A DNA stretch of 63,751 nucleotides, the filler included, from Octopus bimaculoides (taxonomy: Eukaryota): NCBI RefSeq assembly GCF_001194135.2. It is 9 parts of 8 records of this genome, joined end to end, with 100 filler letters (N's around TTAATTAATTAA, not from the genome) between each part and the next. Parts side by side here need not be neighbours in the genome. Positions count along the whole stretch, not along the records: positions 50,779 to 56,335 come from NC_068981.1; 8 more parts are not named here. The stretch is one strand, 5' to 3'. The number at the start of each line of letters is the position of its first letter. The first letter of the stretch is position 1. Of this stretch, positions 54,626 through 56,336 are shown in pieces. The notes beneath the pieces are model-generated. The model ran no database searches and was not told the DNA's origin. It saw only the letters and a program-made list of their open reading frames with translations. Both the position numbers and the translations under genes were made by a program.

Positions 54626-54658
54626 TATGCTACGCCTACCGTGTGCCCTCACAAAACT

Positions 54659-54694
<36 letters not shown>

Positions 54695-54813
54695 TCCGAT
54701 CCGTCCAAGCCCGTTCCCTTGGCTGTTGTTTCGCTAGACAGTAGATAGGGACAGTGGGAATCTCGTTGATCCGTTCATGCGCATCACTAACTTGATGACG
54801 AGGCATTTGGCTA
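54626..54813 (-). rRNA. 28S: Orphan 28S (LSU) rRNA fragment, non-functional, starting at the R2 insertion site
   Basis: Reverse complement reads TAGCCAAATGCCTCGTCATC...GAAAGAAGACCCTGTTGAGCTTGACTCTAGTC, a universally conserved LSU segment. Confidence 0.95.
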
Positions 54814-56336
54814 TTTCTTCTTGTAGACATCTTCATCTATCTGGTTTCCCTTTATTTTCTGTGGGTGGTCCCACTGGTGTCATTGCCTTGGTGTCGCACA
54901 CTTTGACGAAAAGCCCATCTCATAGCCGGGGCGACACCACTTTCTGTAAAACAATAAAAACAACTAAAATAACATGTATATTACTGTCACTTGCAAACGG
55001 GTCGCTTATTGTCTTAGCCGGTGTTTTCTTTTTTTTTTTCTTTTGTCACTATTTTAAGTTTTAGGTCTCTAACAGGTTATTTTCCTAGGTCGTTGACTGG
55101 GTCCTATTTTAAGGAATCCCATGCTGAGAGTTAGTCTCTCAGCATATTGTACGTAGATAACATAGCTGTCCGGCTGAGTAGTCGCCGAAATGATCTGTCA
55201 CGGATGCCCAAGGCGTCCAGTGCCACACTTGCAGGTCAGCACCAGGCACCGATTGTGAGTCCATGCACTTCTACCGGCCGATCAAACTTCTGCAAAAGCA
55301 ATTGAATGAGTGGTCGGTATTTATGCACTTTCTCAAGAGATGCCTACCTCAAGGCATCTCCCTGCTCCAATCGGACAGTCACGTCGATGACTACTACCTT
55401 CTCCGGACAGCTAAATACAAGGTCGGGTATCAGCCTGGAACCTCCTACAATGTAAGAAGCCTCTACACTGACACTCCAACCATGACCTACAGCCTCTTTC
55501 GCCACCAGGCTACATATTTTGTTATGTCTGGCGAGCCGTGGTCCTTTAAGAGCACCACAAACTCCACTGATATGGGAAATAGTCTCTGCCCCTACTCTAC
55601 ATCTTGGACACGTGGAGTCCCCTCGGGGCCCACGCGTCAGAGTTTCACGGGTAGGATATACGTTGGAGTTCATCTTGAGTAATCCCGAGTAGCACCCCTC
55701 AGCGATCCTACCCGGCCTACTGATCCAACTATTGCCGATTGCATCTCCCCGGTACGCCGCCGCACACACACCATGCACCGGCTGAGCCGCCCATCTATGG
55801 GTGTGAATCAGCCGGATATCAGGGTCGTATTCGGTCGCGCCCTCAGGTAACAACGGCAAATTGAAGGAAACTATCAGTTGCTGGTTCTGTTCGGCTAATC
55901 CTGCAGAATCAGCAACTTTCCTAACTGAGACATACCTCGAGGTCAGCAGGCGAAGATTTCGGCGGATGACGCAGTTTGGTATCAGTCTTACCATTTGGTG
56001 AAGACTTGACCCGCCATCACGCCGGCTGCAGTAAAAGAAGGAAGAGGAAGTAGTTTCGGGGAGATGTGATATTTTTCTAGCCCCCACGCGGAAGGCCGTG
56101 TCTAGCCTCTTGAGAATTCCTCTTGACGGCAGTACCTGTACGAGACTATAAAAATGTCTCGGCAGATAAAGTTGCAGCAGCAAGAGGAATTTCTGTCGGG
56201 GTTTCAGCGGAACCCTGCATATCCTATTGATATCCAGTGACACTTGCTCCACTAATATTTGCGCTGCGACCAATGCGGAATGCCGACTGTATCGTCGCGA
56301 CCTGGGGGGCTAACGCGGGTGCGCAGCCCTGGACCN
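54814..56336 (-). mobile_element. R2 non-LTR retrotransposon 3' half (disabled): thumb, CCHC knuckle, restriction-like endonuclease, 3' UTR
   Basis: PLKPRQK, DGG, NVYPTRE, CPRCRVGAETISHISGVC, RHN, PDLV..IDVTV, EKVHKY; one frame 56273-55131 with stops at 55344 and 55236; joined to TAGCC of 28S. Confidence 0.93.

Follow-up and report, generated by a model that had tools for sequence, protein, structure and literature searches.

Here we describe a copy of the site-specific retrotransposon R2 in a window of 63,751 nucleotides (nt; the whole stretch of DNA analysed, filler included) from the genome of Octopus bimaculoides (assembly GCF_001194135.2). The copy lies on the minus strand of one piece of this window (50779-56335, in window numbering as throughout). 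It ends at the canonical 28S target site and continues into 189 nt of 28S ribosomal RNA (rRNA) sequence, which then gives way to AT-rich genomic DNA. We read it as a retrocopy, dead and truncated at the 5' end, of an octopus R2 belonging to the three-zinc-finger (A-type) kind. With moderate confidence, we further attribute it to ectopic target-primed reverse transcription (TPRT) of a read-through R2 RNA with downstream 28S sequence still attached.

An R2 remnant joined exactly to 28S sequence

A single frame of the piece (56273-55134) matched solved R2 proteins in a phmmer search against the PDB, namely turtle R2 (9nl2, E=4e-43; 9nl3, E=4e-33), zebra finch R2Tg (9dou, E=6e-33) and Bombyx R2 (8gh6, E=4e-20). 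The decayed open reading frame (ORF) remnant, mapped by phmmer, HMMER and tblastn to 55134..56256, corresponds to residues ~694-1100 of the turtle protein 9nl2. It thus comprises the R2-type thumb/linker, the CCHC zinc knuckle and the PD-(D/E)xK restriction-like endonuclease that form the C-terminal part of R2-clade proteins. The knuckle, CPRCRVGAETISHISGVC (55557..55610), aligns with the CCHC of 9nl2, 9nl3 and 9dou, and NVYPTRE is found at 55664-55644. Alignment to the solved proteins places the endonuclease motifs IPDLVF (55430-55413), VIDVTVRLE (55391-55365) and EKVHKY (55334-55317) within 55317..55430. Indeed, a sequence-only reading of the window had already assigned an R2 thumb, a CCHC knuckle and a PD-D-K endonuclease to this ORF, and had called the element cephalopod, and on both counts it was right.

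The closest proteins are all from Octopus and are short gene models labelled 'uncharacterized': P0001 (O. bimaculoides, A0A0L8FR87; 87% identity to the window ORF), P0004 (O. bimaculoides; 81%), P0153 (O. vulgaris; 81%) and P0002 (O. sinensis; 63%). Word-indexed protein searches returned octopus fragments only, a third one bringing in a single further locus, and the next-best full-length proteins are 31-34% identical to the window ORF. The 337-aa P0001 gene model, the closest relative of the window ORF, has no stop from the thumb to the natural R2 stop. An amino-acid identity of 87% is roughly what two orthologous dead copies would show after a decay of ~3% in each, the figure found for the 28S tail of the window copy, and P0001 may represent the orthologous locus of the window copy. 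HMMER found 1557 matches to the window ORF among 1.84 billion representative proteins. The full-length ones inspected look like R2-type reverse transcriptase (RT) proteins, mostly with N-terminal zinc fingers, which by a rough pattern count mostly number 2-3. Pfam gave nothing on the window ORF beyond a sub-threshold zf-RVT match, its identification depending on the PDB and HMMER searches, and an exact-sequence look-up with three start variants of the ORF found no identical record.

R2 homology ends at ~56256, within the thumb-coding region. Upstream of this point three other octopus copies (at loci L001, L002 and L003, described below), which are 73-76% identical to one another, still align, whereas the window sequence does not. 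The window copy has no RT domain upstream of the thumb, and no Myb domain, zinc fingers or ribozyme. As an RT with an ADD active-site box is present in the sister copies L001 (in part), L002 and L003-A, its absence here is due to 5' truncation and not to a different architecture. The sequence-only reading had proposed closing the gap at 56337 to reveal the 5' end, the ribozyme and any upstream 28S; a copy that is already truncated at ~56256 holds out no such prospect.

The copy is also dead. A first premature in-frame stop (GDALR*, 55344..55346) falls between the VIDVTVRLE and EKVHKY motifs, at a place where other copies have K/E-E, and a second (GAWC*, 55236..55238) adjoins a 9-nt deletion that leaves IGAWC in place of the IGACGAWC of sister copies. 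The natural R2 stop codon (…YNMLRD*) follows at 55131..55133, and the C-terminus is the same in P0001, P0004 and P0153.

Between the stop codon and the 28S sequence lies a 3' untranslated region (UTR) of 317 nt (54814..55130), which terminates in …CAAGAAGAAA and is shared with L002. A conserved AGTGGGACCACCCAC…AAAGGGAA element stands ~50 nt before its end. A motif AGTGGGACC(A/G)CCCAC (54873-54859 in the window), followed by an A-rich stretch and then GGGAA, is kept in each of the seven copies that were aligned, at ~45-60 nt from the 3' junction, even where the 3' UTRs of subfamilies are otherwise unalignable. The element can form a short GTGGG/CCCAC hairpin. It is presumably part of a protein-binding 3' UTR structure and is a candidate recognition element of the octopus R2 RNA.

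The junction itself reads …CTACAAGAAGAAA/TAGCCAAATGCC (that is, …GAAGAAA/TAGCCAAATGCC, the slash marking the join) and falls at the canonical TTAAGG^TAGCC site, exactly as the sequence-only reading had it. The T of TAGCC at 54813 is position 2280 of the Rfam eukaryotic large-subunit rRNA (LSU) model, which is the canonical R2 site, and the 28S tail runs on from there to 54625 (model position ~2468). The same 3' junction, as expected of the R2 clade, occurs in other octopus copies and in the published O. vulgaris element R2-1_OVu. An Rfam scan of the whole piece picked up two 30-nt LSU scraps only; when the short stretch was rescanned alone, the full 189-nt match emerged (154 bits, E=1e-39). 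Compared with the O. vulgaris 28S flank published with R2-1_OVu, 183 of the 189 positions are identical (96.8%). The six substitutions put the post-insertion decay of the tail at 3.2%, a small figure, and the states of the tail are octopus-specific rather than those of Sepia. After the 189 nt collinear with the R2-1_OVu flank comes AT-rich sequence unrelated to it, and the tail has no poly(A). A 28S stretch passing into ordinary DNA without poly(A) had thus been recognised correctly from the sequence, and only its length, given as 188 bp, needs correction to 189 nt (54813-54625).

Flanks of the window copy

The 3' flank (50779..54624) is AT-rich, repeat-laden genomic DNA of 34-38% GC that contains microsatellites, a degenerate TTAGGG array and SINE-like inverted repeats (SINE, short interspersed nuclear element), and an Rfam scan found no LSU or small-subunit rRNA match in it. 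The 5' flank (56262..56335) amounts to 74 nt of 69% GC that is neither R2 nor conserved 28S, and the piece ends 80 nt beyond the 5' junction. Neither Rfam nor blastn-short found a match for this flank. Smith-Waterman scores against R2 units, the 28S 3' third and spacer were at the level of shuffled sequence, and the published R2-1_OVu strings gave no match either. Upstream 28S (…CTCTCTTAAGG), as would adjoin the 5' end of an R2 in its target, was sought across the whole piece and found nowhere.

Since upstream 28S is missing and the GC-rich 5' flank is unrelated to it, the window copy does not lie in an intact 28S gene. That the R2-28S junction had moved to a locus outside the ribosomal DNA (rDNA), as the sequence-only reading proposed, holds for the 3' side, where repeat DNA without rDNA follows. 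It does not carry over to the 5' side, where the flank is GC-rich and matches nothing. On that side, an rDNA-derived cluster of the kind described below for O. vulgaris is possible.

Sister copies in three Octopus species

We compared the DNA of four loci with relatives of the window copy (L001-L004), which together supplied seven further R2 3' junctions from three Octopus species. None of the four shares its flanks with the window, and they are therefore neither the same locus nor orthologous to it.

In O. sinensis (L001), an R2 truncated within the RT (~aa 530-600) lies behind an unrelated APE-type long interspersed nuclear element (LINE). It ends in …TTCACAA/TAGCCAAATGCCTC, that is, with 14 nt of 28S, followed by a SINE-like repeat. 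At ~7000-9350 of this locus the R2 fragment directly abuts the truncated RT of the LINE in the same orientation, and the join may be either a nested insertion or a template-switch chimera. On O. bimaculoides chromosome CM046606.1 (L002), an R2 extending from ~residue 284 to the end is followed by 90 nt of 28S and then by unrelated DNA, and an ABC-transporter gene lies ~7 kb away. Over the whole alignment (ORF, 3' UTR and 28S) it is 84.6% identical to the window copy.

In O. vulgaris (OX597831.1) the setting is another one. L003-A is a near-full-length R2, broken by several frameshifts and stops and followed by 231 nt of 28S, which encodes CCHH, CCHC and CCHH fingers, Myb, RT, thumb, CCHC and endonuclease. 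It has 79% nucleotide identity to the window ORF and a different 3' UTR. Two inverted, internally deleted remnants (B1 and B2) occur at the same locus, B2 with a tail of ~40 nt of 28S. Some 13 kb from L003, at L004, a first copy is followed by the entire 28S 3' third (Rfam, 762 bits, model positions 2255-3401), then by GC-rich spacer, degenerate scraps of 28S, upstream 28S among them, and the 5' leader of an R2. The second and third copies of L004 are 5.3-kb head-to-tail units, 95% identical, with only TAG/TAGC and CTCTCTT scraps between them. That this cluster derives from rDNA is plain from the complete 3' end of 28S, the spacer, the scraps of upstream 28S and the tandem duplication that it contains.

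In extent, the cluster covers at least 54 kb (79.79-79.85 Mb of OX597831.1; L004 1-13621 together with L003) with at least six R2 copies, and it is either the edge of an rDNA array or a relocated rDNA relic. An 811-aa, multi-exon gene model in it, P0154 (L003 1-8075, L004 1-5750), has a faint Myb-domain match and 75% identity to 25% of the L003-A R2 query; the model is probably an artefact of annotation, put together in part from R2 pieces. An Rfam scan of the L003-A 5' region found no ribozyme, R2 ribozymes being poorly covered there and the 5' boundary of L003-A uncertain. CACTACC… was considered as the R2 5' terminus and rejected, given the longer leader upstream of it in L004.

Across the eight junctions, the R2 3' end/TAGCC join (…A/TAGCC) is identical in six, whereas only TAG or TAGC is left at the remaining two, both of which belong to the tandem array. 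The 28S tails measure 3, 4, 14, ~40, 90, 189, 231 and ~1510 nt, and because their lengths differ, the 28S sequence is not a fixed part of the element. The 5' truncation points differ as well, the window copy starting at ~aa 694 as against ~aa 530-600 in L001 and ~aa 284 in L002. To the left of the junction 1.4-4 kb of R2 is present, versus at most 231 nt of 28S to the right in five non-tandem copies. Upstream 28S, sought at all loci, was absent beside the isolated copies and appeared as a scrap only inside the O. vulgaris cluster.

Pairwise ratios of nonsynonymous to synonymous divergence (dN/dS) between copies were 0.12-0.28 over ~350 codons, with dS from 0.24 (window versus L002) to 1.18. 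Most differences between the copies therefore arose while functional R2 lineages were under purifying selection, and not once the copies were dead. One stranded fragment that was later duplicated is rejected as their common origin, since 5' ends, tails and flanks all differ and dN/dS lies well below 1. The copies, which also differ in host, are independent fossils, shed at different times from a long-active functional lineage.

Origin of the 28S-tailed copies

R2 is co-transcribed with the pre-rRNA, and its 5' end is freed by a ribozyme, with no precise 3' end being defined. If the 3' end of the RNA is unable to anneal to the target, R2 reverse transcription reportedly starts from that end, an observation credited to Luan and Eickbush in 1996. 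Under the origin that we favour, some R2 RNAs would retain downstream 28S at their 3' end, where no precise cut is made. Bound to the conserved element of the 3' UTR, the R2 protein would start reverse transcription from the 3' terminus of an RNA with such a 28S tail, priming at a nick or break other than the 28S target, and cDNA synthesis would stop early, within the thumb-coding region. The expected product is a non-rDNA flank, the R2 thumb-CCHC-endonuclease part, the 3' UTR, 189 nt of 28S and a second non-rDNA flank, in that order. Such a product would be a '3' transduction' of 28S, akin to L1 3' transduction, that has since decayed by ~3%. For the window copy we infer both the RNA intermediate and the off-target priming, whereas its anatomy, exact junction, truncation and decay are shown by the sequences, as are the independence of the sister copies and purifying selection in the source lineage.

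Several features of the copies fit this course of events. Identical R2 3' end/TAGCC junctions would be expected because TPRT into 28S yields them in the parent copy. The asymmetry between left and right extents fits a 3' end set by the end of an RNA, close to the protein-bound 3' UTR, and not random DNA breakage. A 5'-truncated R2 residing in rDNA would have upstream 28S at its truncated end, and the fact that the window copy has none supports an ectopic insertion. The dN/dS values, which point to shedding at different times, and the Drosophila precedents considered below also speak for this origin. L001 and L002 are isolated and 5'-truncated, with short tails and unrelated, gene-bearing surroundings, which an RNA intermediate fits better. 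The window copy resembles these two: it belongs to the same subfamily as L002, is truncated inside R2 beside non-28S DNA, has a short tail and is followed on its 3' side by 3.8 kb of clean non-rDNA. It is this likeness that leads us to favour ectopic TPRT of a 28S-tailed RNA. The sequence-only reading had left the choice between DNA capture and retroposition of a read-through transcript; we prefer the second and keep a DNA-level origin as its main rival.

According to that rival, which we regard as possible though on the less probable side, a piece of an R2-inserted rDNA unit moved or was left behind and was trimmed by deletions to the R2 3' part and a 189-nt stump, be it through decay at an rDNA array edge, ectopic recombination, segmental duplication or capture at a break. 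What counts for it counts against an RNA intermediate. The O. vulgaris cluster shows exactly such a process, with R2-bearing rDNA relocated, duplicated and eroded over at least 54 kb into a 28S 3' third, spacer, scraps, tandem units and remnants. One of its members, L003-A, keeps a short 28S stump of 231 nt, close to the 189 nt of the window. In its GC content of 69%, the 5' flank of the window copy resembles rDNA spacer or expansion segments. Moreover, target-site duplications were sought at L001, L002 and L003-A, where both flanks are at hand, and none was found, and the 74 nt of 5' flank in the window are too short for this test. For the RNA intermediate, besides, the sample is small, consisting of eight junctions of which at most three are clearly isolated.

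A DNA-level origin, however, requires a break inside R2 as well as a second one just 189 nt beyond the R2 3' end, and this coincidence would have to recur at the isolated copies L001 (14 nt) and L002 (90 nt). In the 3.8-kb 3' flank of the window copy there are no scraps of rDNA or R2, in contrast to the O. vulgaris cluster, and the 5' flank matches no part of the 28S 3' third, the proximal spacer or R2. Two processes are visible in octopus genomes, one at the DNA level, as in the O. vulgaris cluster, and one that an RNA intermediate fits better, as in L001 and L002. Tentatively, and with slightly less than even confidence, we suggest that octopus R2 has repeatedly retrotransposed off-target by way of read-through RNAs with 14 to ~230 nt of downstream 28S.

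A chimeric join at 54625 or 56256, assembled from collapsed rDNA repeats, seems improbable to us. It is true that rDNA and R2 are notoriously misassembled (PMC13188248), that the window locus is represented by one assembly and that the piece ends so close to the 5' junction. Yet both tail and ORF are decayed (3.2%, two stops and a deletion), unlike reads from active rDNA, and loci elsewhere show this architecture again in three independent assemblies, of which two are chromosome-scale.

Still less credible is that the 28S stretch belongs to the element itself, in an R2 lineage with a 28S-derived 3' UTR and possibly lost or shifted specificity: some ray-finned fish do have R2 families in which a 28S-like block that is part of the element follows the R2 body directly, R2NS families without target specificity are known as well (Kojima et al. 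2016, PMC5035012), and several octopus copies likewise lie outside intact rDNA, but the octopus tail varies from copy to copy (3 to ~1510 nt overall, and 90 versus 189 nt within the one subfamily of L002 and the window), always begins at the +1 position of the canonical R2 site, follows genuine octopus 28S collinearly, and continues in L004 copy 1 to the complete 28S 3' end, while the published R2-1_OVu sits in 28S with both flanks, so that the variable tail lengths largely refute the idea.

Comparison with known R2 systems

That the octopus lineage has a site-specific R2, as the sequence-only reading deduced from the junction, is correct and already known. The first report of a mollusc R2, from oyster, dates from 2016. 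Ten mollusc R2s were catalogued by Hassan et al. (Genome Biol 2026; preprint May 2025; PMC13188248), and 10 is also the count for Mollusca in a review (PMC13580325). They include R2-1_OVu (Octopus vulgaris), R2-1_SLy (Sepia lycidas) and R2-1_SAt (Sepiola atlantica), each with its 28S flanks (PMC13188248 supplementary file 16). The novelty suggested for the window element was therefore overstated, cephalopod R2s with both 28S flanks being on record in that catalogue.

R2-1_OVu shares with the window copy the host genus, the canonical 28S site and the identical downstream flank sequence. With L003-A it shares the three-zinc-finger N-terminus (CPLC…H…H / C..C…H…C / C..C…H…H), and with the L003/L004 cluster the 5' leader motif (…AGAGAGCTTACGTCC…). 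R2-1_OVu is, however, complete and sits in a 28S gene with a flank on either side, whereas the window copy amounts to a dead 3' fragment of 1.4 kb that lies outside intact rDNA. At its start, the window 3' UTR does not match the published R2-1_OVu 3' UTR string, and on this comparison the window copy probably belongs to another subfamily.

Among solved proteins, turtle R2 (9nl2/9nl4, 9nl3) and zebra finch R2Tg (9dou) have a thumb, linker, CCHC and endonuclease homologous to those of the window copy, and these vertebrate A-type R2s also share its NVYPTRE, DVTVR.E and EKV.(K/H)Y motifs. They differ from it in that identity is ~31-34% and in that the window copy, without RT, Myb and zinc fingers, is non-functional. 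The assignment of the octopus R2 to the A type, which the sequence-only reading had suggested from motifs, would appear to be supported indirectly, by the ranking of the window ORF (4e-43 to 6e-33 for A-type structures versus 4e-20 for the D-type Bombyx protein) and by the three fingers of L003-A and R2-1_OVu; finger number alone does not define an R2 lineage (Hassan et al., PMC13188248).

Precedents for rDNA elements outside their target come from Drosophila. Stage and Eickbush (2009, PMC2718515) described ectopic R1 insertions with up to 14 nt of downstream 28S and concluded that the transcript 3' end often includes flanking 28S. They also reported non-rDNA R2 copies in several Drosophila species and a tandem R1/R2 array outside rDNA, which resembles the tandem units of L004 (PMC2718515). 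As in Octopus, these are site-specific rDNA elements found outside 28S and often incomplete. The Drosophila R1 tails are at most 14 nt, whereas those of the octopus R2 copies are 14-231 nt, and phylum and R2 lineage differ.

In both L1 3' transduction and the octopus copies as we read them, a read-through transcript moves the downstream flank into a 5'-truncated retrocopy. L1, however, relies on a poly(A) signal downstream, and its new copies are marked by a poly(A) tail and by target-site duplications. The octopus copies show neither of these two marks, nor would either be expected for R2.

Other features of the piece

The remaining observations concern the 3' flank. A weak match to the HH9 hammerhead ribozyme at 53011-53085 on the plus strand (26 bits, where the gathering score is 52; E=0.003) has UUGAUAA in place of CUGAUGA in its catalytic box, and is probably a decayed hammerhead of a retrozyme or Penelope-like repeat. 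The degenerate telomere-type (TTAGGG)n array, with ~10 units at 53582-53642, lies in the middle of a 62-nt inverted repeat whose arms (53377-53438 and 53673-53734) are 85% complementary. The whole (53377-53734) looks like a foldback structure, or one like a miniature inverted-repeat transposable element, with interstitial telomeric repeats.

At 51522-51830, a pair of inverted 81-nt arms, 83% complementary and each ending in (GAT)n, look like two inverted octopus SINE copies, and similar SINE-like sequence is present at ~51120-51230 of the piece and in L001. Palindromic GCGCATGCGC-type motifs (ACGCATGCGCA … TGCGCATGCGTA) surround ATGGCCGCCAT at 52519-52600, beside a (TACA)n microsatellite; they could be promoter-like or part of a repeat. 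Rfam matches to mir-297, mir-1277 and mir-3149 (52423-52511) were discarded as the (TACA)n microsatellite only, and a match to SCARNA7 in the piece as noise.

Significance

Taken by itself, the window copy is one more dead retrotransposon fragment, a fairly ordinary fossil. The biotechnological interest raised by the sequence-only reading does not extend to this copy, which is dead and lacks RT, Myb and zinc fingers. Nor does it add anything to the search for usable R2 enzymes, for which octopus, cuttlefish and bobtail-squid R2s with full flanks have been catalogued. In the literature searched, we found no description of dispersed octopus R2 fossils with 28S tails of 14-231 nt, nor of the rDNA-derived tandem R2 cluster of O. 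vulgaris.

There is modest value in the pattern, in that several Octopus genomes hold R2 fossils outside intact rDNA with variable amounts of downstream 28S. It suggests long-term activity of R2 in octopods and occasional off-target integration of 28S-tailed RNAs. If this is true, R2 template RNAs in vivo carry long 28S extensions at their 3' ends, and the dispersed 28S-tailed copies would preserve, in nature, the sites and the manner in which an A-type R2 protein inserts off rDNA, and so provide a natural counterpart to the off-target question in R2-based gene insertion. A genome-wide census of such copies could date the activity of R2 in cephalopods, and could inform on the 3' ends of R2 template RNAs in vivo and on the off-target behaviour of A-type R2s, both of which are relevant to the engineering of R2 for gene insertion.

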